Translations under genes and position numbers: made by a program
DNA from: Caecitellus pseudoparvulus
Lineage: Eukaryota; Protista; Bigyra: Bicosoecida
NCBI GenBank assembly: GCA_965644315.1
Contig: CBFFRQ010000044.1
Span: 124,001-188,000, forward strand
Direction of reading: 5' to 3'
DNA length: 64,000 nt
The notes under the pieces: generated by a model
What the model saw: the letters and a program-made list of their open reading frames with translations, nothing else
What the model was told of the DNA's origin: nothing
The model's database searches: none
Shown: piece after piece, positions 16,413 through 35,781 of the stretch
Layout: each line of letters opens with the position of its first letter
How positions within the stretch are numbered: the stretch's first letter is position 1

Positions 16413-16485
16413 GGTCGGTTAGCTCAGTCGGTAGAGCGTTCGTCTAATAAGCGATTGGTCCGGGGATCGAGACCCCGATTGACCA
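16413..16485 (+). tRNA. tRNA-Ile (anticodon AAT)
   Basis: 73-nt cloverleaf: acceptor GGTCGGT/ATTGACC+A, D arm GCTC-AGTCGGTA-GAGC, anticodon loop CT-AAT-AA, T arm CGGGG-ATCGAGA-CCCCG. Confidence 0.95.
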
Positions 16486-16488
16486 CTG

Positions 16489-16494: not shown

Positions 16495-16522
16495 GTCCAT
16501 GCCGTCACCTGACAGCGCTCCG

Positions 16523-16766
16523 CTAGGAGAGATTTGACGCGTCCTTTTTCACCAGAGTTCAAAGGTCATATTAGTATATTTGAGAGTGGCATCTGTGCTC
16601 CTAGTGAGAATGCATCTCCAGGTCTGTACTAGTGAGAGGTGGTGGCGGAGCCTCGCACTAGTGAATTTCCGCGTGCTGGGAGCGCTACTAGTGCGCGCGG
16701 CTGCTCTGGGCACTACTAGCGCTCCCGCAGCAGCACTTCCTCCTAGTAGCAGATCCTTTGCTAGTG
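16523..16766. repeat. Left subterminal motif array (consensus ACTAGTG)
   Basis: Eight CTAG cores at 16523, 16601, 16629, 16658, 16688, 16716, 16743 and 16761, mostly CTAGTG. Confidence 0.8.
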
Positions 16767-16880
16767 AATTAGGGCCAGCCTGCCGTGACCCACATGCATT
16801 CGAAAACACCTGTAAAGCCGTTCAATGACCACAAGCACTTCAAATTGAATGCTACGGCACGAAAAATAAGCCAAAGGGCA

Positions 16881-18920
16881 TCAGCGCAACGCGGACACGA
16901 GGCGACGAGTAAGCGCGACCAGCTCCGTGTGCACATGGTGCTTCATGCGGAGGGACGTCCACACCATGGCCAACATGCAGCACGCACGCTTCTTGTCGGC
17001 GAGTGTGAGGCTGCCCAGGTCCCCACAATCAACCACCCATTGCTTGTTCTTGATGTTCAAGCAGTCGACAGCGACTTTGTACACAGCCTCCATCCACCCC
17101 AAGACAACCCGGGCCCCTGTGGCGACAACTTCCGGGCCGCGAAGGGCCTCTTCCAATCGATCGAGGCTGGGGCCGTACCGGGTGCAGGCGGCACCCGATC
17201 CTCCGATGGGTGGACACTCGAAGACAGCCTTGATGGTCTCGTCTCTCATAATGCGAGAGCGGTAAACGTCCACCTCCAGCAAGCATGCACGCTGCCTAGA
17301 GCGGTCGGATGTCCTTCGGTTGCCCCTGACCTGCGGCACGAAGATCTATGGTGGAGAAGCAGCAACTGGGCACAGCTTCGCCCCAGCCGGTCCACAGGCA
17401 TATCCATACACACCTTGGGCACCCAGCTGTGGCGGTACTCGGGATCTTCGGATGATACCTCGAACAGGGTCATGCTGTGGTCAGACCGACCAATCGCCCC
17501 TCCAGTGCACTTCTCATGAACAGGATCGTACTTCCTCTTCATATCTTGCCACGGCCCAAAACTTCCCAGGCACTCCGCACTGCACAGAGCTCGAGGAGTG
17601 CGCCATCCTGTTCTGTGCAGACATGGCAGACACCTCCTGTCCACTCACCTCGTGATCTTCGCGCGGCACTTGTTGCTGGCATTTTTCAGTGCCTTTATGA
17701 GACCTGCATAGTTCGCATGCTTGCTGGCCGACACCATGTCCTCCAAAGCACAAAGCACGCCACCCTGTTCGGCCATCTCCTCTTGCAGGGAGGCCTTGTT
17801 CGCTGCTGCTCGCACACTTTCGAGGCACTTAATCTGCCACGGTGAAGAGAAGTTTGTGTCATGCTGAACTGGGTTCGAGTCATGTGCTTCTGGCTGTTCC
17901 CCATCTTCCTCCAAGTCTTCAACCACCTGGAGGGGAGGAACCTGCTCGGAGGTGATTGTGTTGATGGCTGCCTGCAGGGTGTCGACCAAGACTTTAGCGT
18001 CAGCGAAGATGAAGTCCGGGTTTTCAAAAATGAGGCCGACTACGATGCGGCGGGCTTCTGCCCTGAACTTTCGGGGCCATGGAACTGGATCTGCGTCCGT
18101 CTCCTTCTCCAGGACAGCAGCAAGGTGGTCACCGGCATGCGTTGCATGCTTCTTGGAGGTCTTCCTTACCTGCGCCTTCACCGCTGGAGACACGGCATCC
18201 TCCAGATGGGACATCCTCGCCTGCCCCATACCAGCTGCGCGGTGGAGGTAGGACCTGTCGGTTGCAGAGCACACAAACATGTTGCGCATCGCCTTGACAA
18301 TCGCTCGTTGGAGAGGAGTGCCAGAAGACACGGCCATCTCCTGCAGCGAAACAAGTTCCTCTGCAACATCGAGTGGCTTGGGTGCCTTGACAGGCCTGCA
18401 GTCGGCCATAGCATCTGCCACGAGGGCTTCTGGGTTGGCGTTGGCGTTGGCGTTGGCGTTAGCGTTCTGCAACGCAACTTGTCGGTCGCTGTGGCATCAG
18501 CTGCCGCTTTGCAGGCACGTACGCGCAGCTGTAGCGGCGACACTTCCACCAGCAGCTGCACCAAAGAGCTCTTTGTTGTATAAAGATGTGAACGTGGCCG
18601 TCTCAGCTGCAGACGATCTCAGGAGAAAGGGGGTGAAGGCGTAAGCGTCACACACGCAGCGGGAAGCTGCCCGCACCATCGTCACCCTGCAGGACCAAAG
18701 GCATCTCGACGACGGCGGCAGCAAGGCTGTCGGCTCTGGAAGACGAACGTACCACACTACGTGGACGCTTCCGAGTCATCACAGCGCTGGCGGCCTTGCT
18801 GCAGTTGAGCAGGTGGGCAGCTTCACAGAGTTCAGCGCCTGCACCAGTGAACTCAGCCCTTGCCACTGGACTTCCTTCCTCCTCGCTGTCGACGTCCCCC
18901 ATGGAGAATGTGAGTGACAT
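16881..18920 (-). CDS. Spliced hypothetical protein, second gene of the Plavaka/CMC-like element (divergent from the transposase)
   Basis: The ORF segments 17645-18472, 17246-17644 and 16881-17339 join in frame through GT-AG introns: AG|gtgagt…tgcag|T from 17648, and AAG|gtgtgt…cgcag|GTC at 17331-17413. The 5' exons (MSLTFSMGDVDSEEE…RKRPR) are plausible, but their splicing is unresolved. No recognisable domain. Confidence 0.6.
18434..18466 (-). repeat. (GCCAAC)n hexamer microsatellite encoding NANANANANAN
   Basis: GTTGGCGTTGGCGTTGGCGTTGGCGTTAGCGTT on the + strand. Confidence 0.9.
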
Positions 18921-19150
18921 ATTGAACGTTCGGGGTGGGTTTGCAGCAATGGGGGCAGGTTCAAGGGCGAAGTGGACGCAACGATTGGATGTGGAGAAAG
19001 CCACCGAATGCAGGAGCGAGAAGTGGGGGCCAGCCGCCCGCACTGCCCGAAGCTCGTACACGGCCGTGAGCAACGATGATGTAGGAGGGCTAACGTGGGC
19101 TTCTTAATTTTCAGTCATTCTGCACCGGGCATCGGTGTTTAGGCGAGAAT

Positions 19151-19204
19151 TCACTGCCAACGCAATCCGATCACCACGCCAACGCAAACTCACCACGCCA
19201 ACGC
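19151..19204 (+). promoter_or_regulatory. Triple direct repeat TCAC(CAC/T)GCCAACGC in the divergent promoter region just upstream of the transposase
   Basis: TCACTGCCAACGC (19151), TCACCACGCCAACGC (19171) and TCACCACGCCAACGC (19190), ending 24 bp before the ATG at 19229. The regulatory role is inferred. Confidence 0.45.
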
Positions 19205-19228
19205 GTTGCACGGCACGTTAAGCTCAGA

Positions 19229-22200
19229 ATGAGCTTCCGCTGCAAGATCTGCGGCCAGGAGTGTGGCAACGAACGGTCTCTTGGTGGTCATACCACCCAA
19301 TGTCGCCGCAGACGATTGAGGGCTTTCTACGAAGAACGTGCCGAACGCCTAAGTGAGATTCAGGCCGCGGAGGATGCCAGGGCACGCACCACCCACCCTG
19401 CACGTAAACGGCGCCAACAAGCCGCGTCAAGGCCTCAGCACCACCCGGGTAGCAAGCGAGTGGCAACTGGGCACCCTGAAGAGGGAGGCTCACCTGTTTC
19501 TGTTGCGATCCAGGCTGGAGGACAGCCTCATTCTGCCTTCCATCACGCTCAAGCTGCGCAACCAGCACCTCCTCAGCCTGCTGGAGACCCTGAAGCAGCA
19601 GAACATGCCCCTCCACATCGATCCGGTATGGTCGCCAGAGCCATTGCCCATGCCGACCGTCTGTCAGCGCGGCAGGAGGACGGCGATGAAGCCATCGGAG
19701 GAGGGGGCATGGGCCGGACCATACTTAAGTGCCTGCTTCGGTTCAACGTCAGCAAGAGTGCACTGAACCTCATCATTCAGGAACACAACGATGCCATGAA
19801 GGCCTACCAGATGCTCGTTTGCAAGGAGCTTGGCATCGCTCCGCGGTGCCCCAAAGTTCCAGACGTCGACAAGTTGTTGGACATGGCCGCCGCAAGCACC
19901 CCCTCCCCGATCTCCATCACAGTACCCCTTCCGACGGGACTCTCAGGAGGACAAGTCAAGGTTCCCTCCATGCCGCTGTGGGACGTGCTTACACGCACGG
20001 CTGCCGAGGTACCACTGGAGGACTTCGCCCCTCACCGAGGCGGTGGCGTCGCCAGTCCAGAGTGGTTCCCATCAACACTAAAGCTGCCAGCACACGATGA
20101 TGCTGCCAGCAAGGTAAGAGATAAATTTCTAGTCGCGGACATGCTGGCGGCAGCGCACTGGAGCCGCATGAAGGATGCCTTACCGCTGCCGTGTGGTGGG
20201 GAGATCTCGCTCCCTGCGCCCCTCCAGGTCGGCCACGGCAGCCTTAAAGAGCCGATCAGCGTGGAGAAACAGTTTCGCCCGATCGAGCCCGGGGCGGCGG
20301 GACAGACGTGGAGCCATCCATCCAATGGCGTCTTCCTGCGCAATGCGGCTGAACACGCCAAGGCGCGCGGGTCACTGTCCATGCCGCTGGTCATTTTTAT
20401 GGACGAAGTGCACCCTGATGGGGCTGGGAAGCATGCATTGTACCCCATGATGCTCTGGCCGCTTGCAGGGGATGCTGCATCCATGCGCAAGGCGCACAGG
20501 GCAACATTGCTCGCCATGCCCCCGAGCCCAAAGAGACTTTCCAGGGATGCCAAGGTGATGCGAGAGGCGGGCCTGACTTCGGCTGCGGCCACAGCACAAG
20601 CAGCACAGTCCATGGTATTGAGCCTCGTCCTCCAACCCTTGCTCGCGATCCAGAAGATGGGCGGCATTCCCAAGGAGGTGACTCCAGAGCAGTCCCTTGT
20701 GCTCAAGTCGGCGGGGTACAAGGTATTCAAAGTGGCCACGCATAGACGCCCAAGCCAGGTGATGGAGTACGTGCAGATGATTCCTTGCATCATCCAGTTA
20801 TCAGCTGATATGGTGGAAGCGTGGGATCAGTTTGACTTGCTCCATCGGCGGTGCGTGCAGTGTCGCTGTGTCCCCAGTCCACAGCTATCCTCGCTCGCGG
20901 CTCTCCGGAACTGCCAGCTCAGGGTACAGGGAGAGGGAGCCGGCAGCGATGAGGCAGCCGCGGCCACTGGACATCGCAGAGGGGCACTCAGCGCGTGGGA
21001 AGTGGCTGAGAAGGTACTCGGAACCCATTTGTGCTTCTTGAGGCCTCCTGACCCCATCCATGCGGCCGACACGGGGGCTGTAGCGGCTCGGTGTGAGAGG
21101 TTTGTCATGGCTGCGATGACTGTCGGTCCAGGACTTGCTGCGAGGGAAGCACTCCTTAAGAGCCGATGGGAGGCCGTTAAAGGACTTACAATAAATGGGA
21201 CCCGACTGTATGGGGGAAGAGCGCTGCCATGGCGGCAGAATGCTGGGGGTATGATGCGGTCGGCCGAGCGCGTTAGCAGGGCGCAGTGGTTGCCACTCAT
21301 CATCGGACACAACCAAGACGTCATAGCTGATCCCCAGTTGCACACAATGGTGCAAGTGCTGTGCCACTGTACACTAATAGTGCAGGCATACATGTATGTG
21401 CGGGACACACTGGATGAAGCGGCCCTGCTTGGCATGCAGGTTTGGCTAGCTCGGATGGTTGGCACGCAGGAGCTGATCGCTGAGCTTGTGCGAGAGGCAG
21501 CCTCCAAGACCGAAGGGATTGGCATTTCAGGCGACATCAGCACACACTATCCCAAGGCCCACGAGATACAGCACCTTCCTGCAGCTGTGGCAGGCTTCGG
21601 GGTGGTTGCGGCACTGGACACTGACAACGGGGAGGGCCGGCATCCCGCTCTCATCCGCCTGTGGAAGCTGTGCAACTCTGCGTTTGGGGCAGCTAATATG
21701 CCGAAGTTATTGAAGTACGCATCCATCCGCCGAGACATGCTGGCAAGCGAGGCAGGGGTGACGAGTGCCTCATCACAGGTAGCTGAGGAGGAGCTCGCTT
21801 GTCTGCTGCAAGGCAACCCGCTGCCGGAGATGCCGTACCTGTCCCCTGTAACACAGGCTGGCGAGGTTCTCCGAACACGAAGCGCTGTCTGGCAACTGCT
21901 CGACAGGGAAGACAGTGGACTGGCCAGCACAATCCGCAAAGCCTTGGAGCCCTGCGTTGCCGAAATGTCTTCGTCTGGGGTCTTGCCTCCAACGGCTGTG
22001 AATACCATGCTGCAGAGCGTCTCCAGCACAGTAGGTGCTGGAGATAGGATGGTAGGACAGGTACGGCTGTGCAGCACCGTCTTGATGCGCTTCCCTGGCG
22101 GAAACACCAACACTTTGCGCTTCCCTGGATACGTCGTTGTGCGTGAGGAGCAGCAACAAGGAGCAGCCGCGCCAGCCATTGGGAGTGGGTTGTTCCGTGC

Positions 22201-22495
22201 TGTCGCTGCTCTTGTTGGTGATGCACCCAAGCACCAAGAGGAAGATGCCTCGATTGAGGAGGTGGTGTTGTTGGGGACATTCTTGCACCCAGATGAGGCC
22301 CACGCATGCATAGCTGGATGGAAGTACGTGAACCCGCTGGATGTCGCCCCGCCAGCCAACGCAGTGGGTGGCAGTGTTCTCATCGCTCCAGCAGTGGTTC
22401 ACCCCACAGTAGTGGAGGGGCACACTTACACAGAGGAGCCAGATGGTGACCCGGTTCTCTTCTGGCTGCCGTCCATCACAGCGCGGCAGCACTAA
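19229..22495 (+). CDS. Plavaka-type (CMC-related) DDE transposase with N-terminal C2HC zinc finger, 1088 aa
   Basis: N-terminal CKIC…GHTTQC. The conserved Plavaka/CMC blocks occur in order: PLVIFMDE…G.HALYPMML…R…LL, LSADMVE…CVQC, PDPIHAADTG and YPKAHEIQHLP…FG…DTDNGEGRH. The ORF is uninterrupted. Confidence 0.85.
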   Translation: MSFRCKICGQECGNERSLGGHTTQCRRRRLRAFYEERAERLSEIQAAEDARARTTHPARKRRQQAASRPQHHPGSKRVATGHPEEGGSPVSVAIQAGGQPHSAFHHAQAAQPAPPQPAGDPEAAEHAPPHRSGMVARAIAHADRLSARQEDGDEAIGGGGMGRTILKCLLRFNVSKSALNLIIQEHNDAMKAYQMLVCKELGIAPRCPKVPDVDKLLDMAAASTPSPISITVPLPTGLSGGQVKVPSMPLWDVLTRTAAEVPLEDFAPHRGGGVASPEWFPSTLKLPAHDDAASKVRDKFLVADMLAAAHWSRMKDALPLPCGGEISLPAPLQVGHGSLKEPISVEKQFRPIEPGAAGQTWSHPSNGVFLRNAAEHAKARGSLSMPLVIFMDEVHPDGAGKHALYPMMLWPLAGDAASMRKAHRATLLAMPPSPKRLSRDAKVMREAGLTSAAATAQAAQSMVLSLVLQPLLAIQKMGGIPKEVTPEQSLVLKSAGYKVFKVATHRRPSQVMEYVQMIPCIIQLSADMVEAWDQFDLLHRRCVQCRCVPSPQLSSLAALRNCQLRVQGEGAGSDEAAAATGHRRGALSAWEVAEKVLGTHLCFLRPPDPIHAADTGAVAARCERFVMAAMTVGPGLAAREALLKSRWEAVKGLTINGTRLYGGRALPWRQNAGGMMRSAERVSRAQWLPLIIGHNQDVIADPQLHTMVQVLCHCTLIVQAYMYVRDTLDEAALLGMQVWLARMVGTQELIAELVREAASKTEGIGISGDISTHYPKAHEIQHLPAAVAGFGVVAALDTDNGEGRHPALIRLWKLCNSAFGAANMPKLLKYASIRRDMLASEAGVTSASSQVAEEELACLLQGNPLPEMPYLSPVTQAGEVLRTRSAVWQLLDREDSGLASTIRKALEPCVAEMSSSGVLPPTAVNTMLQSVSSTVGAGDRMVGQVRLCSTVLMRFPGGNTNTLRFPGYVVVREEQQQGAAAPAIGSGLFRAVAALVGDAPKHQEEDASIEEVVLLGTFLHPDEAHACIAGWKYVNPLDVAPPANAVGGSVLIAPAVVHPTVVEGHTYTEEPDGDPVLFWLPSITARQH

Positions 22496-23273
22496 GCTTG
22501 TGAGAGCTCTGCGCCACACGCTGGCTGACACGAGGAGTACCATGCTGCGGCACGGATGGACCACCTTTCATCAGGCCTCCCTCACATGTCATCCATGCCA
22601 ATGCACCGAGCCTGTCTTGTGGCAGCGTACGTGGCGAAGCTGCGTGCGCCAGGGCCCTGTCCCATTGAGTGGTTAGGAGGGGTTCGTTTTTGAGCTTGTC
22701 AGGAGGGCATGTTGGCGATAGTTGTATGTGATAATGTACTGAGTATAAAATAACGAATGCATACATTATTTTTGTCAGAGTGTGCTTGAAAGGTTGGGTC
22801 TGTGATGCAAACTGGATGCGGAATTTGCTTGCCCACGTTTGTAAAAGGAGGCTGCTGTCTTATGTTCCAGTCTACTTGCGCGTATTCGTACACTTTCGTG
22901 ATCCAATGCAAATTTTTATGAAGTGTGGGCCGAATTTCGAGGAATCGGGCCGTTTTGGTGATCACCCTCTTTCGATTCGGGTGAGTTGTCTGTCGATTAC
23001 GAACAGAGGGCCTGCGTCGTCATCGAGGTGCTCACAAACCCGCATTCGACACCGGCGCAACCAGCACTCCAGCCCCCATGTGTCTTTCACAGTGTCGAAC
23101 TACCGATCAAACGATCAGCGTCCCAGGGTTGCAATTCACAATTTTCACCTCGAAGGCTTGCACTTCCCGCAAGGCGAGTTTCGCGGAAATCGAAATGAGT
23201 CTTGGTTGAGACAGGCCGAACAAGGCACTGTGAGAAAAGACTCCCCGTATTGTCTTGCACAGATCATACAACC

Positions 23274-25007
23274 ATGTCTGGCATGCAATTCCTGGTTTCC
23301 TTTTTACTGTTGCGCCGGCGGCAGCATGTCCGTAGGTTGCAAGCGCTCCAAGCACTTATTGCCACAGAAGCAGCACTGTTGCTGGCAGTGGTAGCAATGG
23401 CCGATGAAGATGGACACGAGCAGGCCGTGCCACTACCGTGCTTCGATGAAGACTGTGCTCTGGAGGAGGGCGTGAGGGCCAGCGCACGTGGCCGCACCAA
23501 TCCTCTTGCAGGTTTGGCATCCGGTGTGAGGACGTGGGTGGCACGGCAACATGGAGTGCCTCTCGAAGAGCACGAGGTTTGCACAACCCCACATACGGTG
23601 TTGCAGTATACTATGAAGCAGTTGTGCTCTGTTGGTGTGAACACTATTTTAGCTCTATCGGTGTGGTTCATGAAATCTTCTGCACCAAAACTCTGGTACA
23701 GGTGGGTCATGCATTCGATCCTACCCGTGGAAGTAGAGGCCCACGCTGTGGAGCTTGCAGGTGATGAACCTGCAGAGGAACCAGACTCACAAGAGCACAG
23801 GACCTGGCAGAGACAGCTTCGGCGCCACAGGGAAGACTGTCTGCACGAGCACTGCAGTCGCCTTGGGGCATGCGAGCGTCCCATGGTGCAGCAACAGCCA
23901 TCAGTGGCAGACTGGTGGGGTGCTGTGGACTCATCATTCTGCGGCCAAGGATGCACTTTCAGTTGGCTGGAGGCTTGTTGCCTTGGAGTGCATTATATGT
24001 GCAAGGGTTTCAACATGAGAGCTGGACAAGAAGCGTTCACTGGGGCATCGAAGTCCACATGCAGTCGAATCCTAAAGGTTTTCTTGCGGTCTATCTCATC
24101 CAGCATGTTTGAACAGCAGGTGTACATGCCAGCACCAGATTCTGGGGAGTGGATGGAGAGTGTACGATTGAACTTTGCCCTGTCAGGCATGCAGCTGCCG
24201 TGCGTAGCAGGCAGCGTGGATGATACACATGTGCGTGCTTACATCAGTGAAGATAGTGGAAAGGGCGTATACATAAACAAGGATGGCGTGGCTTCGGTTA
24301 GTGCCCAGTGCATGGTAAGTGGCCACGGACTCTTCTGGCAAGCAGACATTGGGTATGCTGGTGCCGAAAGCGATCGGGGGAAGCTCATAAGGTCTCCCAT
24401 GTTTGCGGCAATGGTCGGGAACCCAAGCTTACGTCCTTGTCCACTCCCATATACATTGGCAGCAGACTCGGGATTTCGTCCGGGGTACACATTCTTACTT
24501 CTTCCGTTCGACCAGCGGGACACTGATGTGGTGCAGCCGAATCATTTGGTGACAATTTTCCACGATGCACTTTTGCACATTCGAGTTAAGGTAGAATGTG
24601 CATTTGGAGAGCTCAAGAACAGGTTCCGCATCTTGAACAACACTGCGAATGGAAACCTTGGGCCAGCAGCAGTTGCACTGCGTCTACGTGTAGCTGTAGC
24701 ACTGCATAACTTTGTACTGCGAGCTCTGCCATTGCGGGCATCTGTGTGGCATGCCCTTGATGTGACAGCGCCGGGGACTGTCTGGGGTGACCTGCTGGAA
24801 GAAGCAACGGCAAAGGTGGTAGAGGACTTGCTTGAGGCGCAGCCCCCTTCATGGAGTATGCCGAGTGCCATGGGATGGAAGACGCAAGTGCTGGAGCTGG
24901 CGCTTGGCCAGCTTCCACCCACACCATCTTCAAGTATGCTGGGGTTCAGTATCGCTCCATCATGGTGGGCACTGCCCAGTGGTGCCGCGAGAGAGTTGAA
25001 GAGCTAG
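23274..25007 (+). CDS. Harbinger transposase (DDE_Tnp_4 / HARBI1-like nuclease); true C-terminus may extend to 25102 via an intron
   Basis: Motifs: GASKSTCSRI (HTH), CVAGSVDDTH, YINKDG…SAQCMV, GAESDR, LAADSGF…LLPF, RVKVECAFGELKNRFRIL and LHNF. First ATG at 23274. Confidence 0.9.
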   Translation: MSGMQFLVSFLLLRRRQHVRRLQALQALIATEAALLLAVVAMADEDGHEQAVPLPCFDEDCALEEGVRASARGRTNPLAGLASGVRTWVARQHGVPLEEHEVCTTPHTVLQYTMKQLCSVGVNTILALSVWFMKSSAPKLWYRWVMHSILPVEVEAHAVELAGDEPAEEPDSQEHRTWQRQLRRHREDCLHEHCSRLGACERPMVQQQPSVADWWGAVDSSFCGQGCTFSWLEACCLGVHYMCKGFNMRAGQEAFTGASKSTCSRILKVFLRSISSSMFEQQVYMPAPDSGEWMESVRLNFALSGMQLPCVAGSVDDTHVRAYISEDSGKGVYINKDGVASVSAQCMVSGHGLFWQADIGYAGAESDRGKLIRSPMFAAMVGNPSLRPCPLPYTLAADSGFRPGYTFLLLPFDQRDTDVVQPNHLVTIFHDALLHIRVKVECAFGELKNRFRILNNTANGNLGPAAVALRLRVAVALHNFVLRALPLRASVWHALDVTAPGTVWGDLLEEATAKVVEDLLEAQPPSWSMPSAMGWKTQVLELALGQLPPTPSSSMLGFSIAPSWWALPSGAARELKS

Positions 25008-25122
25008 CCCTTCTGCACCTGCAAGCACCTGAACAGCCTGGGGCTGCCGGCGAAGGTGATGAAGGGAGTGACTGGGAAGGTGACTCTGTTGGCAGTCAAT
25101 AATGCAGTGTGTTGTCTCATGT

Positions 25123-27343
25123 TCATGACTGCATGGGTTGCCCAGCAACACTACGCTTCTTCAGGGCTGTAACCATTTGAAGTCGGGCGCGTGCGACCTT
25201 CAGCTCCTTGTCTGCGTCTGACAGCGGGTGCGGTGGCATGCCACGCAAGGTTGGAGGCACACTTCCGCTGTGCAGCTGCTCCAAAACAGTCTGAACCTGC
25301 TCTTGCATGCTAAGGTCACCGTCAATGATGCTTAGGTCCAACCACCCCTGCACTCTTGTAATTACACCTGATATCGCTGCATCTACCGCACGCTCACTAT
25401 GTGCGGCAGCAGCACCTGGTGCAGGCACCGAAAGCGAAGGTGCGGGCTGCTGCACTTGCAAGGACTGCTGGAAAAACTGAAGAAGTGAGGCGTCCTGTTG
25501 TGCTTGTCGTTCCCGTGCTGCCTCTTCAGCAACCTGTCGTTTCTCCAGCGAATCTGCCAAACGGGCAACGATGTCACGCATGCCTGCGGCTGGTGGTGAC
25601 GTGCCAGACCCCAGGCGACCTCCATCCAGGGCTCCAGTTGCTTTTGCAACAGCAGCAACACGGCTTCCCGTGCTCGTTCCACTCCCCGCACCTGATAGGT
25701 ACTCTCCGCCCTGTCGCGGACTTTCAGTGGGCAACGCAGCGGGCCTGCCACTCGCCAACAGCGAGGCTACTGTGTGTGATCCTTCAGATCTAGCCTCTGC
25801 AAATATCCCGTTGGTGATGTTGCGAGGCACTGAAGACATCGTTGCCTTTGGCCTGGCTTTGCCTTGGCACACGCTTGCATAATTCATCAGCTCGCCCGGA
25901 AGCAGTCCACCGTTCAGGGGTGGATAGCGCAAGTCATCAGTTGGTCCCACAGGCAACCACATTTCCTTGTTCGTTACGCTACACCGCAGGCGCTGGAAGC
26001 GCAAGCGCGCAGCGGCGCTTGCGTTTCGTGCCCTGCTCCACCCCACCTTCGTGATGTCCCAACGTGTGTACTTCTTTCCATTTAAATCAAGAGAGGGAGC
26101 ACCAGGGTGGCTAGGGGCTGTGGGTTCGCTTGCCCCCCCGCTTCCCGTCCTTCTGCCCTCAGACCCGTTGATGATGTCAACCTGTTTCTTCAACGTTTCG
26201 AGGCTGGCCCAAGTACCTGAAGCTGGAACCAGAGCCTCACGAAGGAGGCTTGAAACCAGGACCAAGCCTGACCACGACAGGAAGGCTTCTTGGGAATCAC
26301 TACCTGGTGTTGAAACCAACACCATGTACTTTGAGTCGTCTCGCTCCGGCCATGGCCTTCCTAGCATGTTCGTGTCATGCTCCTCGAAGGCAGTGAGCAG
26401 CAACGGCAAGAATTTGTGAGCTAGGCTCTTGCCCACAATGCCACTTCGCATCTTGTTGCTCCCTTGTGTGGCAAAAGTCCGGAACAGGCTTCTGTCAGAG
26501 CCTTCCGGGCATGGCTCACCCGACGAGACAACACGACCCCCAAGAGATGAGTAGTCAATGGTACCCTCACGAACACCCAGACGAACGATAGCTCCAGACA
26601 TTCTCCATGCACTTGCTTTGTTTCCAAAGGCAGCCCAGGTCGACGACGGCATCAAGGTGGCGAACTCCTTCTTGTCAGGGTGCGTCTGCACCCCATTCTT
26701 GGACGGTGTTTGCAACAGAGCTCGATCAGTAGAGGCCCACGGAATTGGGCTCGCTGAGTCGAGACGCATCAACGCACGGGCAGGGGAAGTGGCAGCTGGT
26801 GTCGCGCCGACGGCACCAGCAGCACTCCGTGGTGGGGAAGGGCTGCCAGCTGTCCAGGACACACCACCACTCTCCAAGTCAGGACTTGAACTGTCACTCT
26901 TGCCCTCATCACCACTCATGTCAACGACCTCGTCTGCGGGCAGAGTCAGGAAGGCGTGTTTGCGAGAAGCGTTTCGGAGTTTCACACAGCGGAAATGAAA
27001 ACGAACCGAAAGCTTCCAGTTGTTCCTTAGCGTTTGTCTTCATCCTCCTGGCAATGCTTGCTGTAAGGGCAGCAATCCGGACTGGTCTGGTAGGCGTTGC
27101 GATGGCGGGTGATTCTTGCGCAGCGAGTTCGCTTCCTGGAGGCGTTGCAGGCAGCTCAAACACCCGTCCTGCTGCCCCGAGCCTCGCGCCCGTCCGCAGT
27201 CGGGAAGTCGGTGCGTTACCTTGAAGGAACTGTCGGACCAGTGCATGTGTGTCCGCTTGCGAGCCTTCAACTGCGGTTCTTTTGCCACTCGTCGGCGCAT
27301 CTGCCTGAACGCGTGCATTCCGGGGGCGCTTGCGGCCAGACAT
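25123..27343 (-). CDS. Harbinger ORF2, putative DNA-binding partner (~715 aa, 2 exons)
   Basis: Exons 27343-27007 and 26933-25123 join in frame across intron 26934-27006 (G|gttcgt…cccgcag|AC). N-terminal NLS-like MSGRKRPR and C-terminal coiled coil LADSLEKRQVAEEAARERQ. It lies within the TIRs, convergent with the transposase. A canonical Myb/SANT domain is not obvious. Confidence 0.75.
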
Positions 27344-27977
27344 GGCAGCAAATCATTCCAAGAGTATGCTCACAACTTACTGTGAATAGTTTAAAAGTAG
27401 AGTTTGATATCCATATCTGCACTGCTCGCCATGGTACACAAACCACTGCCAGCAAGTGGCAAATTCCGCATGCTAATAGGCTCGATAAACAACGCTCTGT
27501 TGCACACGACAGAGCGGCCGTTCAAGTCTAACATCCTCTGTTAGTGTCAAGGTGACAAAACATGCTGCCTGCAGCACTTTTCCGTGAACTTCAAAAAATG
27601 CATTCTCGTTTCACAGATTTTCTCGATTCAGAGGCCTCCGCTGGCCTCAATGAGACACGGCCCAGGCATGTGCATCATGCCGAAGCCGTCCAACACCACT
27701 ACCACAAGCCCAACACTGAACACCAGGGCCAGCCACACCTGCAGAGTAGCTATGACAGGTATATCGGGAGCCGGGGATGCGGTAGGAGTCCCACCTGGCC
27801 CCCCTTTGGGCAGGCGTTGTGAAGGCGTTGGCCAGCTGTGTGAAACGCAATGTCAGTCGACACAGGGCTCCCCCCTAGGCCACCGACACCATCACGGCCC
27901 AAAGAAGAAGCGTACATGGCTTGAAAGTATGAGGAAGAGGGCACACAGAGTTGACGTCCGCGCCAGCTTCATGCTCG

Positions 27978-28359
27978 CTAGTGCGTGTGTGTTCCCATAG
28001 CAGCAGCGTCAGACTGTCTCCTGCACTAGTACAGCCCTCGCACTAGTACAGCTGGCCCTGCACCAGCTCCCAACCGCGCTCACACTAGCAACGCTTCGCA
28101 AAGGTCTAGCGCACTAGCGCACAACCTACAACTAGAGAAATGTGTGGTGAAGGGGATTGACAAATCCCCGGCACACTAGCAATTTCAACCCAAGTGATGC
28201 ACGCCAAGCACTTCACTAGCACAGACTTGGCACTAGCACAGCCGACCCGTGTGAAAACACGCACTGGCACCCACACTAGTCAATCATTTTCTCAAGTTCA
28301 GCGCACTAGTGTGGGTTTCCTCACTACGCCAGAGAGGGTTCGAAGGCGTAAATTACTAG
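27978..28359. repeat. Right subterminal motif array (consensus CACTAGY)
   Basis: Thirteen CTAG cores at 27978, 28026, 28043, 28085, 28106, 28114, 28132, 28176, 28216, 28233, 28276, 28306 and 28356, mostly CACTAG, i.e. inverted relative to the left array. Confidence 0.85.
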
Positions 28360-28592
28360 TGGGCCGACTTCCAGTGACGGTGTCCCTTCTTCTTGCCACA
28401 CTTGAGAGCAATAAATCGAAGAAGCCACACCAGTTCCGACCAGAGGCAAGGAAGAATGTGAATCTGCCGACCCAATTTGCTGCTTAGTGTGCTTCTTTTC
28501 TTGTTTCCGTGGTGCGGTGTCAGGCAACGCCCGTCCAGGTACAGCTGAGCGGTTTGCCGCGACTTGAATCAGGCCTGGCTAGCAGGTGAAGG

Positions 28593-31500
28593 ATGTCAGA
28601 AGGCAGGGACTCCAGAAGGGTTGCAGCGCTTGGTGCCGCGAGGCCCGAGACCCTGCCTTTCATTCACCTGCACTGGGGGGTGAGTTTGCTGTGGCGCATG
28701 TCTTTTCGCTTGAGATCCTGCATTGCTCTGCTTGTATCCTCAGGAGACTTGCTCTGTTGATGTACGGGTTCCAGAACCCGAGTACATCCAAGAAGCCACC
28801 ATTTCCTGCACTGTTCCTCATGTAGCCGTGGTTTCGGCAGTGCATAGCAGCACAACAGCAGCTGGGAGCGTTTCGGTAACGTTTCGTTGTGCGGCTCGTC
28901 CAAACAGTGACGCTGCGCTCGCAGACGAAGTCCTGGGGGGTTACCTTGAGATAGTGCACCCAAGATTTTCGACCGTTTTGATCCCGATGGCGGTTTCTTC
29001 ACGTTTGCCAGGCCCTTGCACGGCTGATGTTTCGGCCCGGGCATTGGCTGCGTTGCGTGCCAGGGATGCAGCCTTGACGGCAATTTGCAGTGACCGAAGC
29101 AGCGGGGAACGGTTACGCGAGCTGCAGCATTTGGAGGAAAGGCTCGCTAGCTTGACTTCTTTAACTGAGAAGCCCTCCCGGGATGGGGCGTCTGATCGCT
29201 TGCCCGAGCTTGGCGAAGGACATGCTACAACGGCTGTAGCCTTGTCCGTGCTGAGCCGAAAAGGAGCGCTTGAAGCGCAGGGCCTCGATGCAGAGGTGGT
29301 TCGGGTGTCAAAAGATGCTTGGGAGAGTTTGGCACGGCAGTATCACGGGCTTTCAGTCGCGTTGGCGGAGCATTTGAAGCGTGCATTCTGTGAACTCAGG
29401 CAGCAGCATTCCGTGGCAGGGGTGGAGTATGAAGTATCCTTCTCTGACGCCGAATCCTTTCAAGTTCCCGAGCTACTGATACCACAGCCCCTTGATGAGG
29501 CATCCACGGCTTCCCTGCACCGCTCGCTTCACCGGCTTCAGGCTGAGCATAGGGAGCAAGTCGCGGAGCTGTGGGCACTGCTCGAAGCTGCTGATCAGGA
29601 GAAGCGTGAATCTCATTGCTTGGCTTGTCAATCTGCAGGCCACAGACAAAGGAAACTGGAGTCTACATTACGAACAAAGGATGACCAGCTTGCAGCTTTG
29701 TCAGTTGAGGTCGAGAGGCTGCGTGAGGACTTGCAACGGTCCGCCTCCAAGACGGCAGCCACTACTCTGGGAGCGCAGGATACTTCGTCACCAGCCAGCT
29801 CCAGTAGCACTTCGACCGAGGAGAGTGTTCAAGTCGACCCTCCTCAGGAGGCATCGTTGGAGCTGAGTTGGCTGCGGCGATGCTTGAAGCATGAGGTGGG
29901 GGAGCGTCGACGAGCTGTCCATGCCGCGGCGGAGTGCTCTCAGGAGCTTAAAGGCCTTGTCGAGCAGTGGGAAGCGCAGCGTGCGGCGCTGCAGGCGGAA
30001 CTTGACGCGAAAGGTAGGGTGTGTCACGAGCTTGAGTCAGATTTAGCCAAGGCGCAAGCATCCCTGGAGGTCATGACCGGCACCATCAAAGCGCTGCAGG
30101 CGGACCAGGAAGGTGACTCGGCTGCAGTACAAGATGAGTGCGTGCGACTGGCTGCCAGCACGATTGCGGCGATTCACGCACAGGAATCAGCCAACGCCCG
30201 CTGCGAGCGCGAAGCAGAGGAGTACAAAAGGCAGCTTCACAGGCTGTGCACGGCACATCAGGCTCAGCTTGCGAGCTCAGCCACGCCTCATGATGCAGAC
30301 GTCCAGAGCCAGTGGCTCAGCGAAGTCTCCAAGTCACTTCAAGCAATTGGTGAGGTTAGGTCAGTAGAAATGCGGCTGCGACACTGCCAGCATGCCTGCT
30401 CAGAGCTACAGCAGCAGAACACTGAGCTGCAAGCCCTGATCGAGGCCCAGACAGAAAGCCACGCCAAGCAGCTGGAGCAGCTGACCATGGATTCACGAGC
30501 CCTCATCATTGAAGCATGCAAGGGATGCAGTGAACCGACCCCCCCCAGAGGTTATCGAGGGCGTGCTGATGCCGCTTCTTTGCAGCGTCCTCGCTCATGC
30601 TCCGTGCACGTCGGCCTCCCATACCTCTCCAGGAGCAATCGTCGCATTGCGGCACATGAAGGCGTGAAGCAGCTGCAAGCTGAGGTGGCTGCGTCAGCCA
30701 AGGCTCAGCAGGTCCTGGGCTTGCACCTGCAGGCTAGTCTGAAGGCCCAGGCAACCGTCTGGAGGCAGATCCTTGTGTCCCTTCGTTCGGCACAACCAAT
30801 TGGCAGCGCCGAAAGGCACGAGGCATCCAAACTCGACCAAAGCTGGCAGCTTCTACTCGAATTATGCCGCAGCCTGCAGCACGCGGTTGTCTCACAGCAG
30901 GCTCAACGGGGAGTGCAGCACCACACCACACGAAAGCCGTCACTTGGAACTGATACTTTGGCTTCCGGTGGTTCCCTTTCACCACCTTCCCTGGAGGAAA
31001 GCCGGCCAAGTCTCATGGCTTCCGTACCGAATGTCGTTGCTTCCTTGGTTAAGGAAGGCCTGTGCTCTGCTGTTCAAGATGTGCAGCAGTCGCACGGCAT
31101 TGAGGCAAGCGACCCTAAAGAGGTGGCCGAGGCAGTTGGCGAGCACTTTGCCGTTGGGCTCGCCCGTGAGCTGGCTGTCTCACAGGTGCTTGTACACCAA
31201 CTCAAGAGCAAGATTCTTGCACAGGAACAACTGCGGGGCATGGCTGCCACTGCCCACGCAGGGCAATCTACGCTTGATTCTCTGTACCGCTTTGAGTGTT
31301 GGGGCTCCGCCGCCCAGCGCCTGACTGAGATATCGTCTGCTCTGCTGAGTCCCACGCTGAACGAAACCACTCCCCGCCTTGTCGAAGAAGTCCTGGACGA
31401 ACTCGCTGGGACAGTCAGCCAGATGAAACAGTGTGGGATACTGCAGACGCGCTGTGGCGAGCAGTGCTCAGTGGTCGCACATCATGTGAAGACTGCTCTC

Positions 31501-34500
31501 ACGGAATCACAGCAACTAAACTCCGAATTATCGAGCGCTCATGCATCGAGCAGTGGTACCGAAAGCGAGGCGCGTGGTCTCCCGCTCCAGGGCATTCCAT
31601 CTTCGACGCCGACCCCGCGCCGTTCGTCCAGAACGCCAGCAAACGTTGTGGAGTCTGCCAGAGCGCGGTTGTCTGCCCTTTGCCTCCAGGCCCCGAAGCA
31701 ACTGCGGAGCGCCCTCCTTGATGTACTCAAGGCGTTGAGTGTGGAGGGCCAGACCGCAGACACCGCGATCCAGACAGAGGAGCTGCTTCCTCAAGTGCCA
31801 GTCGAGCCTGCAGCAGCAGTGTCCACAGGCACACAGGCAAGCATGCCAAAGGCACAGAGTGAGAGTATTGGTGTACAAGCCGTGTCACAATCTTCGTCTG
31901 TGGCTGTTCAGTGTGTCGCTTTGGAGTCCGTGCCAACACCAGCCGTTAATGGTGCCGATTCTTCAGCTACCGATGGCCGTGACCTGCCTCAGTTGTGGCT
32001 GCGGGTCGACCGCCTCTCCACAGGCTTACAGCAATTGGTGCGAGTCCTGTTGGAAGAGAGAGAACAAGCTATGGAGTCTGACACACTCGACAGCCTGGCG
32101 TCGGCAGGCCCTGCTAGCCACGAGCTGCTTGCACAAGCCTCACCCTCCCCGCTGCACCAAGGCAGAGCGACCGATTCAAGCACTACATCATTGACTCCAG
32201 ATTCGAGCCCGGCCCCAACAGAGCCGCGCAGCCCTCAAGCACCTGGGGGCCAGGTGCAGCCAAGTGCTTCATCCTGCGGCAGTGCAGCAAGCGAGACGGC
32301 ATGCCACAATGGCAAGTGTTCCTGTCAGAGCGTGGAGCAACAACTTGCTGAACTCCACCTTGCTGTGCGGGAACTGACAGGCGCTATGGGAAGGCGCGGA
32401 GGCTCTACGCATGAAGTGCGCTTTCCACCTGGGGAGGAATCCGGGGCAGCTATTGGGAGCACCTCTAGGTGCTCTTCGGGCATTGACGATGCTCCTCCAC
32501 ACCCGACATCCGTGGTGACGGCCTCCCAATCAGCTGGCATGCACCGTGGATTGCCAAGCACACCTGAGCAATCCCACGCCACAGAAAAAAGCCCAGAACA
32601 TGTAGTTGACGAGCACCACGCCTCTCTGCCACTTCTGGCTCAGATGCCAGCTGATGTGTGCAGCAGCGGAGTGGAAAGCACCTGCGGGCAAAGCCAAGTC
32701 CCGAGACTCCCAAGTACGGAAGTTGGTATTCAGACAAACCAATCTTGGATAGGCCCCCCTCCATGCACAGTGTGTGCCAGCCGCGTTTCTGCAGCCGATG
32801 CAGCCAGCCTCCAAGAAGAGCTCGGGCGCCTTCAGGCCAAGCTTCATCAAGCCGCTTGCCGAAGCCAGGTTGCCCAGCACGCGGCAGAGCAAGCTGAGAG
32901 CAAGCTTGAGCACTGGAGAAACGTTGCAGAGACATCCAGCGCAGAAGTATCTCGACTTTCTGAAGAGCTTGGTACCTTATCACGGGCACATGCGGAAGGA
33001 AAGAGCGCGCTTGAGCGAAGCCAAGTCGCTGCAGAGGTGTCACAAGCTATGCACCAGCTGCACTTGAACCGGTTGCTCCAGCACACTGTGGCACTTCTCA
33101 GCAGCAAGACTGGAGGTGCTTCTCGGAAGGCTCTGCAGCGTGCACTGCGTGTCGTTGGTACAGCTCCTGAAGTGCGAGAGCGTGTGTTTGTTCGGCAGAT
33201 CAGTCGTGGTCGCAGCCGTCACAAGGACACGCCTTACGCCCAGCGGGCTCGCCCCCGCAGTGTATCTCCATCTATATGGCGACAGAGGCGTGATAGGTAT
33301 GCAGAGGCGCGTGCGAGATCAGCGAGCCCAGCAGCTCAGAGGGTCGGGGGAGGGTTCAAATATGCCAGTCGCAGCTCAAGGCAAACAGCTCCCGTGGACC
33401 GTGCCAACGCAGCTGCACACCAACGTGATGGAAACCTTGAGCCGCGTGCAGTTTCAGGGCGTCCGCGGCGCTTGCTTCCACAGCGCACAGGGACATTGAC
33501 CCCCATTCTTCACCTCAAGTGTGAGGCGCTCCCGCTTGATGCTGCGAAGGTGGTCGCTGGAGTTCTGGCAACGCTTGCGAGGCAGGACGTAGCAATGGCA
33601 CAGCTGCTGCGGACAGGAGGGCAAGTGCCACCACCGGTCCCCGCGGATACTCCTGCCCACGCAGCCCTGTCATACCTTCGGCAGTTCATGTTGCCCCATC
33701 CTGACGCGGGAGCGGTGGCAGCAATGCTGGAACAATTGGGCACTGGGAGTGGCATTGGTGAGCAAACCCCACGAGCAAGCAAACCAACATCACCTGTTGA
33801 TGGTGAGGTGGTCGTAAGGGAGGGGCATCTTGAGTCTGGCGCTGCAACAGAGGCAAATGGGAACAGTGGCCACGAAGATCGCCAACTGGTGCATACTCTG
33901 GCAAGCCATTTGAAGAAGCTCGCAGCCTCAACGCCAGCTGAGCCTCAAGGTCACGATGTTCAAACGCAAGCACCTCAAGCGGAAAGCCCGAGGTTGCCTT
34001 TACCACAGCAAGACTCCACGTCTCAGCCCCTGTGTGCTCCTGCACTGGCCACCTCTGCAACCCCTCCCACTGTTGCTGCAGCTGCTGCTGGCACAAGCAC
34101 TCAGGAATCTGCAGCTTCCGCCAGAGAATCATTGAAGCAGACCGATGAAGACGCGCGCGATTCCGCGACTCCCACGCCTTCCGATGTGAAGAAGCCGCCG
34201 AGCAAAGTGAAGAGGCTGAAGTCAGCCCTCGCCAGACGTACCAGCCAACTGCAACTTTTGCTGGATCAAGTAAGTGGTGTCGGCGAGGCACTCCGGAGTT
34301 TCCACGCTGCCACGGCCCAAGCACAGGGGGGCAAGTCCCAGAGCAGCATGCCGAACTCCGAAGAAGCCGGGCGTGCCCTTGAGCAGGAAGATCATGCAGC
34401 GCACGTTGGAGGGCAGCAAGGATTGGCTCGCAGGTCTACTGGCATGGCGCCTAGCCAAGCTCGGCTTGGAGGCTGGCACACCCTACTTCGAGAGGCGGCG

Positions 34501-35781
34501 GCGGCCCTCAAGGTGGCTGCGCGGGACGCACAGAACCGAGCCAAGGAGCAAGCACACAAACAAAGACGAAAGATGAGTGCTCGACGCACGGGCATGGCAG
34601 CAGGTGTTCGAGCAAGTGAGGCAAGCAGCCAGAAGGTTTCCGCATTGCAAGAAGAGCTGGCGGCATCGCAAGCAAGTGCAGCGTCCCTGCTGACCCAGCT
34701 TGACTCGGCTCGCCGCCTCGCCAAGACTCGCAAGACAGCTCTGGATGCACTGAAGAGCAGCATGCAGTCTACAGGTGCATCAGCAGAGGCTCCTCAAGCA
34801 CCTCAAATGGCCATACGAAGCGATTCCCAAGGAAGTGTTCCTGCGAAACCTCGGGAATCTGGAATGCGTCGCACCCCTGCATCCGCAGCAGGACCAAGCC
34901 TCTTCGACCGATTGAGCACTCCCCGCTGCAGGTCTTCTGCATTGACCCCAGCGAGCGGCTCAAAGGGGCCAAGGACAAGCTCAGGCGGAAAGACCGGCGC
35001 CAAGGCGACGAGGGCACAGGAATCCCCTTCTGCAGAGACGCTGAGGGAGCTGGAGAGCACAGTGTCGAGCTTGTCAGCGGCAGAGTCAAGCCTTTCTCGC
35101 CGGGTGGAAGAGCTGAGCGCATCCCTTCACAGTGTTCAGGCAGAAGCGGACATGGCAGCCGGGCTGGTCTCAGATTTAGCTGCGTCGCTATTTGACAAGC
35201 TCTGCGAACAGGTGAAAGCAAATTCTGACGTCGCTCAGAAGCTTTCGAAGGGGGGGGACATGGCCAAGACCTGGGCTGGGTACACTTCCCGCGCAGCAGA
35301 ACTTCAGGGCGCTCTGCAGCAGCATTTGGTACAGCGGAAGCCAGCAACTTTGCGCCCCCAGTCTGTATCGCACTTGGTCGCTGCAGTGTTGTCGGACACA
35401 GCACAGGTGAGCCACGCCGCAGGAATGGCCCAGCATCACGAACAGTCCAGCGCTGCATCCATCGCAGCGGCTGCACTTGCAGATGTCGGTTTAAAACACG
35501 GTCTGAGTCAGTGCCACTCTGCCTTGTGGTCACCAGCAGCTCCGAGCCCCCCTGCATTTCAAGCTGCCCCGCTGCCCCATGCGACCGAGCTGGCGCCCCC
35601 AAGGGCTGATGGCAGCGACCTGCGAGGCCTGGGTGGTCCAGGGCTCCCTGGGGCCTCTCTTGCAGAGCTCGTCGCAGGCATCGGCCTCAGCAGCTCAAGT
35701 GAAGACAGCGGACAAAGGTTCTCCCAGCTGGCTTCTGCCGCACAGGGGCCTGCAAGCGTCGCTACGATGGAAACCGTATAA
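28593..35781 (+). CDS. Large coiled-coil / low-complexity protein (~2,370 aa), possibly cytoskeletal or centrosomal
   Basis: ATG at 28593. Phase-0 intron 28680-28743 (gtgagt…cctcag) joins into the 2352-aa ORF. Long heptad-rich E/Q/L/A segments alternate with S/P-rich disordered regions. Confidence 0.8.

Follow-up and report, generated by a model that had tools for sequence, protein, structure and literature searches.

Introduction

Several types of Plavaka-related DNA transposons have been described. In fungi, PlavakaA shows 2-bp target-site duplications (TSDs) and TGT..ACA termini, and PlavakaB shows 2-3-bp TSDs and CATCA..TGATG termini (Kojima 2025, PMC12730594). In the CMCT (CACTA/EnSpm, Mirage, Chapaev and Transib) clade, the TSDs are 2-5 bp in length, and the termini are 5'-CA..TG-3' "in most cases" (PMC12730594). 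Giant Plavaka elements with accessory genes were reported from red algae (10.1101/2025.02.11.637652), and potentially active EnSpm-Plavaka elements were reported from Auxenochlorella (10.1101/2025.02.07.637104). Here, a Plavaka-related transposon from the protist Caecitellus pseudoparvulus is described. It is included in a 64-kb stretch of the genome (C44:124001-188000), which was analysed as a whole and is designated the window; positions are those of the window unless a contig is given. The assembly is GC-rich and comprises 30.6 Mb in 215 contigs.

The region 16502-28380 is a complete cut-and-paste DNA transposon of a very divergent Plavaka/CACTA/RAG1-like branch. With a probability of roughly 0.9, the whole is best explained as two nested DNA transposons, an outer Plavaka-related element with two genes and an inner Harbinger. 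An initial annotation of the window, made from the sequence only, had regarded the region as a full-length member of a possibly active Plavaka/CMC-like family, and Plavaka as known mainly as a protein domain. The latter view is out of date, since complete elements with termini and duplications have been published (PMC12730594; 10.1101/2025.02.11.637652; 10.1101/2025.02.07.637104).

Termini and Target-Site Duplications of the Outer Element

The outer element consists of 16502-22652 and 27663-28380, ~6.87 kb in total, which equals the size of the subfamily B elements described below. The left terminal inverted repeat (TIR; 16502-16526, plus strand) starts with CCGTCAC, and the right TIR (28356-28380, minus strand) ends with GTGACGG. 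These 25-bp tips pair at 17 of 25 positions in inverted orientation. The left junction reads gtcca, TG and then CCGTCACCTGACAGCG, with CCGTCAC beginning at 16502, and the right junction reads CCAGTGACGG, closed by GTGACGG at 28380, and then TG and tcccttc. The dinucleotide TG at 16500-16501 is thus repeated at 28381-28382, as a 2-bp TSD. Both the terminal pairing and the TG duplication had been claimed in the initial annotation, and both were recovered here.

The assembly was searched with each end and with the whole region; 21 loci were fetched and their junctions were read. The positions 16502 and 28380 are the exact limits of similarity in 20 further genomic copies or fragments: the homology of other copies starts at the former and ends at the latter. 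Both flanks are readable in six copies, and identical dinucleotides are found in five of them: TG/TG for the window copy, CG/CG for L001, TG/TG for L005, CG/CG for L010, and AT/AT for L011. By our own calculation, with 1/16 per copy, the chance of at least five matches among six copies is ~5e-6. The flanks vary among the single-ended copies, which indicates that the dinucleotide is a part of the target and not of the element. The genome-wide alignment of the ends, suggested earlier as a check, shows homology halting at CCGTCAC/GTGACGG with variable 2-bp TSDs.

The sixth copy, L004 (C94:119666-123257), has no matching dinucleotides. It is a 3.4-kb derivative with transition-mutated tips, CCGCCGCC and GTGGCGG, versus the normal CCGTCACC and GTGACGG. 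Another derivative, L008 (C18:1078857-1081065), is 2 kb in length and represents a third subtype; it is without the first five bases of the left tip (CCGTC), has AT at both flanks, and holds a remnant of the transposase C-terminus full of stops.

The empty allele was sought with the pattern TTTTTTGTCCATGTCCCTTCTTC, as an exact match in metagenome contigs and with up to two mismatches in the assembly of the window. Neither search gave a match, and these blanks are no evidence of fixation.

Subfamilies and Recent Mobility

The copies include two subfamilies with autonomous members, designated A and B. Subfamily A has a single autonomous member, the window copy. The A-type internally deleted derivatives of 3.4 kb (n = 7) are mutually 95-99.8% identical, and retain the left 2.55 kb (~92% identity) and the right 0.63 kb (~87%) of the window element. 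The elements of subfamily B are 6.85 kb in length and are present in at least 12 copies. Seven aligned copies are 99.96-100% identical apart from 1-6 gap positions, and a full-length open transposase frame is found in three B copies.

The family was recently mobile, and very recent transposition is indicated by the near-identity of B copies located at different sites. The idea of a full-length and possibly active family is thus retained for a complete, multi-copy and recently mobile family, but the 11.9-kb span proposed for it is occupied by two elements, not one.

Many B copies (L011, L014, L015 and others, on contigs C69, C15, C63, C19, C36, C51 and C200) differ from the intact copies only by a few single-base indels, which disrupt both the transposase and exon 3 of the second gene. 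These indels represent either a frameshifted variant that has spread or consensus errors of the assembly.

The divergence between subfamilies A and B is uneven. The transposases were compared between 19229-22495 of the window and L010. The synonymous divergence (dS) of the transposase amounts to 0.74-0.91 over its first 230 codons, but to only 0.27 for the catalytic core and 0.16 for the C-terminal part; for the second gene, it is 0.83. The element ends are ~70% identical, and the right end ~69%. This mosaic suggests recombination or gene conversion between the subfamilies.

The Second Gene

The second gene (gene 2) lies on the minus strand at 16881-18920 and has five exons, with 574 codons open in both A and B. 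Its model was read from the minus strand of the A/B alignment. Exon 1 (18677-18920) starts with the ATG at 18920, and this ATG and an upstream motif are kept in both subfamilies. It is followed by exon 2 (18523-18606), placed by the A/B alignment, by exon 3 (17649-18429; 781 nt), whose frame is open in A and B, and by exon 4 (17414-17579), which is bordered by conserved GT-AG introns. Exon 5 (16881-17330) contributes 149 codons and the stop at 16881-16883, and shows 63% amino acid identity to subfamily B. The four introns, all GT-AG, are 70 nt (18676-18607), 93 nt (18522-18430), 69 nt (17648-17580) and 83 nt (17413-17331) in length.

The 2.7 kb upstream of the transposase are collinear between A and B, with ~68% identity and almost no indels. 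The mismatches in this part are three-periodic, and the frames on the minus strand score highest. All four introns are at the same positions in A and B, and for introns 3 and 4, conservation is visibly lower than in the adjoining exons. Indels that are not multiples of three are seen within introns 2 and 3, while the exons differ in length only by multiples of 3. The proteins share 53.8% amino acid identity, with dS 0.83 and a ratio of nonsynonymous to synonymous divergence (dN/dS) of 0.42. Judged from this pattern of conservation, gene 2 is a real gene under purifying selection. The divergent spliced orphan gene of the initial annotation is thereby borne out by the conserved introns, the 574 open codons and the dN/dS of 0.42.

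The database searches for gene 2 were run exon by exon. No Pfam family was found on any exon scanned singly, and the ESM-Atlas look-alikes for exons 3 and 5 had chance-level scores or gave no usable match. In the genome, the exons of gene 2 are found only in the A and B elements and in one 2-kb derivative. When the surroundings of the other local Plavaka-like families were searched by tblastn, no relative of gene 2 was found. All 3.4-kb derivatives have in common a premature TAG in exon 3, which indicates that these derivatives are without both functions.

The two genes are divergently oriented and separated by a spacer of 308 bp (18921-19228), which has low A/B identity with indels. From this geometry, the spacer is presumed to be a bidirectional promoter.

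From the architecture of the element, we infer that gene 2 may encode a helper analogous to TnpA of En/Spm. A competitor of this assignment is that gene 2 is cargo, for example a captured host gene or an anti-silencing factor, whose product does not bind the element ends. This is a serious contender, falling somewhat short of an even chance. It would suit the lack of any DNA-binding or other domain in the Pfam and ESM-Atlas searches, and the faster evolution of gene 2 (54% amino acid identity between A and B, against 83% for the transposase). Accessory genes of Plavaka are moreover varied, with TET/JBP in fungi and PAG1-3 in red algae (PMC12730594; 10.1101/2025.02.11.637652), and several copies of the 3.4-kb derivative exist despite their common broken gene 2. 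Against cargo, gene 2 is intact in both autonomous subfamilies with conserved introns and a dN/dS of 0.42, and its absence from the rest of the genome is what an element-specific function would predict. For a trans-acting protein, broken copies of its gene would likewise be anticipated in non-autonomous elements.

Subterminal Arrays

The inverted arrays of subterminal motifs recognized in the initial annotation were confirmed as arrays of CACTAG, with positions conserved between the subfamilies. There are 26 CACTAG sites in the 64-kb window, and 18 of the 26 are within 16601-16766 (mostly on the minus strand) and 27978-28361 (mostly on the plus strand). The ~11 kb between the two arrays include zero sites. 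The left array (16601-16766, minus strand) shows CTAGTG, the reverse complement of CACTAG, with a spacing of ~28-30 bp. The right array (27978-28361, plus strand) includes ten plus-strand sites, and three sites are inverted.

The CACTAG/CTAGTG positions are kept in A and B despite only ~70% identity of the surrounding DNA. In the right array, the distances of nine CACTAG sites from the tip differ by no more than 1-2 bp between the two subfamilies. Conserved positions of this kind are what protein-binding sites would look like, and the motifs are regarded as putative sites.

The Transposase and Its Relationship to Plavaka

The transposase gene (19229-22495, plus strand) is an intact open reading frame (ORF) of 1088 aa, with the DDE core at ~aa 355-839 (nt 20291-21745). 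A C2HC finger is located at aa 5-25 (nt 19241-19303, plus strand), with the spacing C5-x2-C8-x12-H21-x3-C25, and weak C2H2-type Pfam matches are seen at the same position in paralogs. The ORF and the finger are as initially annotated. Between A and B, the transposases are 83% identical in amino acids, with dN/dS of 0.29 overall and 0.16 in the core.

Many distant paralogs are present in the genome, with 22-29% identity and open frames of ~940-1240 aa. A profile of nine paralog cores (A2) was searched against 1.84 billion representative proteins and gave 22 matches, some of which are near-copies from related assemblies. Eight of the external matches pass the Pfam gathering score for Plavaka, with 46-103 bits, and one of them is from the basidiomycete Sporobolomyces johnsonii. 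The E-values of the Plavaka proteins in this search are modest (1.5e-9 to 5e-4). None of the 22 matches carries an EnSpm-type family, and every external match with a Pfam annotation is Plavaka.

The alignment of A2 with six Plavaka proteins by hhalign has a probability of 99.4% and an E-value of 3.7e-21 over 452 columns, and covers all three catalytic motifs. The aligned blocks are FMDEVHP (first D), SADMVEAW (second D), a Cys motif, PPDPIHA, and YPKAHEIQH...DTDNGEGRH (E). In an alignment of 17 sequences including Plavaka, D392, P406, D527, C547, D608, H611, P775, K776, H778, G791, D797, E802 and H805 are invariant. D392, D527 and E802 are predicted to constitute the DDE catalytic triad. C542-x2-C545 is present in subfamilies A and B, and C545 and C547 are invariant among eight local paralogs. 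H778-x3-H782 is likewise shared by A and B, but some local paralogs do not have the second His.

These alignments support the homology of the transposase to Plavaka, and its position would be in a Plavaka-related branch of the CMCT group, inside or beside Plavaka. The Plavaka/CMC similarity claimed in the initial annotation therefore stands by way of the family profile, the 99.4% of hhalign and the invariant DDE residues, but not by way of PF18759, the Pfam model that the annotation had proposed for a hidden Markov model search of 19229-22495.

The predicted structure points in the same direction. The AlphaFold2 (AF2) model of aa 340-850 has a pLDDT of 72.9 and a pTM of 0.74, and its top Foldseek matches are all RAG1, Transib or BbRAGL. 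With VIA-align, the Z score is 14.8 for the RAG1 core (356 aligned; root-mean-square deviation (rmsd) 4.7 Å), 13.9 for HzTransib (325 aligned; 5.0 Å), 13.3 for BbRAGL (336 aligned; 4.3 Å), 13.2 for the P element transposase (282 aligned; 4.4 Å), and 6.3 for Hermes (246 aligned; 6.8 Å). The modelled core fold appears to be RAG1/Transib-like, which fits the grouping of Plavaka with EnSpm, Mirage, Chapaev and Transib/RAG1 (PMC12730594).

A number of observations speak against a recently mobile, Plavaka-related element with two functional genes. PF18759, whose gathering score is 26.3 bits, gives no match to the 1088-aa ORF even at E<=10, and three distant paralogs reach this model only below the threshold, with 16-17.5 bits. 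A word-index homolog search with the core (aa 340-860) was empty. The termini are CCGTCAC..GTGACGG, not TGT..ACA or CATCA..TGATG (PMC12730594). Seen from the CMCT clade, the tips are CC..GG instead of the usual CA..TG (PMC12730594), while the 2-bp TSD is within the range of that clade; counted from either tip, CAC/GTG occupies positions 5-7. No other autonomous copy belongs to A, and the nearest relatives of the window copy are derivatives diverged by 8-13% with gene 2 broken, so that recent movement of the window copy itself is unsupported. Finally, gene 2 has no detectable relative outside the A and B elements, which leaves its helper role a conjecture.

Scanned against Pfam at thresholds of E<=0.01 and E<=10, the 1088-aa ORF matched no EnSpm or other transposase family either, with only a chance-level match at E 0.1.

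Part of these observations would also suit a transposase that belongs to a separate CMCT lineage, sister or outgroup to Plavaka and of a rank like ESTA or Lanisha. The failure of PF18759 on the ORF, the 15-19% identity of the ORF to genuine Plavaka proteins, the modest library-wide E-values (1.5e-9 to 5e-4), and the tips unlike those of both PlavakaA and PlavakaB (PMC12730594) are in its favour, as are several local families with 22-29% mutual identity that have CCGTC tips in common. All Pfam-annotated external matches are Plavaka, however, and none is of EnSpm type; the hhalign probability of 99.4% extends over the whole core; and the 2-bp TSD is as in PlavakaA. A separate lineage is accordingly considered doubtful, and the assignment to a Plavaka-related branch is preferred.

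Related Families

One of the local families is 8.2 kb in length and encodes a Plavaka-like transposase of 1124-1173 aa. In its copy L034 (C43:241000-250999; element at ~520-8761), a 574-aa ORF is located upstream of the transposase in divergent orientation (2335-4059, minus strand), and its BLASTP comparison with gene 2 of the window was not significant. The left tip of this family is CCGTC(A/G)TGAGATTTTC, starting with CCGTC(A/G)TG, and its right tip reads GAAAATCTCTTGACTG, so that CCGTC tips also occur outside A and B. In the one copy with both flanks, no clean 2-bp duplication was seen under the ends as read.

Relatives were also found in public assemblies of ENA and Logan. P0001 and P0023 are transposases 98-99% identical to the local 1155-aa family of L026 and L037, and P0002 is ~53% identical to the local family of L022 and L023. 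These matches indicate that related strains or species carry the same superfamily. Outside this genome and its near relatives, the closest protein match is P0005, with 29% identity; its contig (L046) has no CACTAG arrays and no obvious CCGTCAC/GTGACGG pair.

Proposed Mechanism

The following course of events would account for the locus. The outer element entered intergenic DNA, 15 bp past a tRNA-Ile gene, and duplicated TG. Its transposase would recognise the CCGTCAC tips, and either the transposase or the gene 2 protein would recognise the inverted CACTAG arrays. The transposase would excise the element and reinsert it at a 2-bp staggered cut. In a later step, a young and highly active 5.0-kb Harbinger entered 157 bp past the transposase stop, with CAG duplicated. 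The analysis shows the boundaries, duplications, copy numbers, homology, gene model and selection; the catalytic activity, what the motifs and gene 2 do, and the present mobility of the window copy are the inferred parts of this scheme.

A bolder version can be offered only tentatively, and it is rather improbable as a whole. In this version, the element would be a two-component RAG1-like system in which the fast-evolving orphan gene 2 protein, as an independently evolved analogue of TnpA with a divergently transcribed gene of its own, binds the CACTAG arrays; the subfamilies would exchange modules, and the element would represent an undescribed protist branch of CMCT with CC..GG tips.

Insertion Site and Nested Harbinger

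The host tRNA-Ile(AAT) gene was predicted with ARAGORN at 16413-16486 (plus strand), outside the element. The left tip lies 15 bp past its end, just beyond the T-run, and this position could mean that the element targets tRNA genes, inserting just past RNA polymerase III terminators. Such targeting is very unlikely, and was rejected as a trait of the family, as tRNA genes are missing from the ~100-bp flanks of all 21 further copies or fragments. The adjacency to tRNA-Ile looks like a coincidence for the same reason.

The segment 22653-27662 (5,010 bp, plus strand) is a separate PIF/Harbinger inside the outer element. It has imperfect inverted ends, GGCCCTGTCCCATTGAG at the left and CTCAATGAGACACGGCC at the right, which match at 15 of 17 positions in our own reading of the TIRs, and it is flanked by CAG on either side (22650-22652 and 27663-27665). 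The ORF at 23202-25007 (plus strand) matches DDE_Tnp_4 (PF13359) with an E-value of 8.1e-13 and 48.7 bits, above the cut-off of 24.8. A second ORF of 620 aa (25123-26985, minus strand) has no Myb/SANT or other Pfam match at E<=5. The Harbinger sits 157 bp downstream of the stop of the outer transposase, and the genes and ends of the outer element are intact. In subfamily B, the site is unoccupied and CAG is present once, which makes it a true empty site.

The sequence 22649-27665 of the window matches at least 15 other places in the genome at 100% identity (e.g., C13:124391-129407). Many contigs break at this Harbinger, and several begin inside it. Given the identical copies and the contig breaks, this Harbinger has probably been active more recently than any other element encountered in the analysis.

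That the 11.9 kb are one large multi-gene element, with the Harbinger-type transposase and the adjacent ORF as cargo or a second module, could be entertained because these ORFs lie within the CCGTCAC/GTGACGG limits and disrupt neither outer gene, but it is already refuted by the own inverted ends and CAG duplication of 22653-27662, its 15 or more copies of 100% identity at unrelated places, and the single-CAG site in B. Equally negligible is a domesticated, fixed and single-copy transposase-derived host gene, with the terminal similarity and TG arising by chance: the exact subfamily has one autonomous copy and its ORF is under purifying selection, but it is already refuted by a family of multiple copies that end at exactly the same bases, are flanked by 2-bp duplications of varying sequence, and include near-identical sister copies as well as deletion derivatives. 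The initial annotation had named a single-copy, domesticated gene as one outcome that would overturn it; the family is instead multi-copy, with one subfamily near-identical.

The neighbouring host genes include those for UDPGP, UCH, an AAA ATPase and a 2-oxoacid dehydrogenase E2. The E2 matches a Logan protein at 100%, while the identity to its named relatives, from oomycetes, Naegleria, nematodes and chytrids, does not exceed ~53%. The host is a eukaryote with spliceosomal introns. An uninterrupted ORF of 2352 aa (28723-35781, plus strand) starts ~340 bp to the right of the element and has no Pfam family at E<=0.01.

Comparison with Known Systems

The nested element agrees with PIF/Harbinger in the DDE_Tnp_4 transposase, the 3-bp TSD, the short TIRs and the oppositely oriented second ORF. 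The canonical TSD of PIF/Harbinger is TWA, whereas that of the nested element is CAG, and no Myb/SANT domain was detected by Pfam in its second ORF.

The outer element resembles En/Spm (CACTA) in its short TIRs, small TSD, inverted arrays of subterminal motifs and two proteins, and the proposed logic of a transposase combined with a binder of subterminal repeats would also be the same. It differs in the lack of CACTA tips, in the TSD (2 bp versus 3 bp), and in the lack of any Pfam match for the ORF apart from one at chance level. The two proteins of En/Spm arise by alternative splicing of one transcript, whereas the second protein here is from a separate and divergently transcribed gene.

With RAG1, Transib and ProtoRAG (BbRAGL), the similarity is in the predicted fold of aa 340-850, which aligns with the RAG1 core. 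The sequence identity is only ~10%, and the TSD is 2 bp here and 5 bp there. The outer element has neither a RAG2-like partner nor a heptamer/nonamer like that of recombination signal sequences. Since the core fold is predicted to be RAG1/Transib-like, the clade could be studied experimentally with a young family that includes intact copies. In such a system, it could be asked whether the second protein is needed for end recognition.

Plavaka shares the following features with the outer element: the homologous core, a 2-bp TSD as in PlavakaA, a transposase of ~1000-1100 aa, short imperfect TIRs, and an accessory gene. In contrast to the described Plavaka elements, the ORF is missed by the Pfam model and is only ~15-19% identical, the accessory gene is an orphan that is neither TET/JBP nor PAG1-3, and the host is a protist and not a fungus or a red or green alga. 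The blindness of the Pfam model suggests that elements of this kind are probably under-annotated in protist genomes, and the family profile A2 detects these Pfam-invisible elements.

With this element, a known type of transposon gains a further lineage; it does not represent a new type, and the picture of the existing kinds of transposons is unchanged by it. For a Plavaka-related lineage that is neither fungal nor algal, is very divergent and has moved recently, the locus offers a complete list of the cis and trans parts: the tips, the TSD length, the positionally conserved subterminal arrays, an intact transposase and a conserved partner gene.

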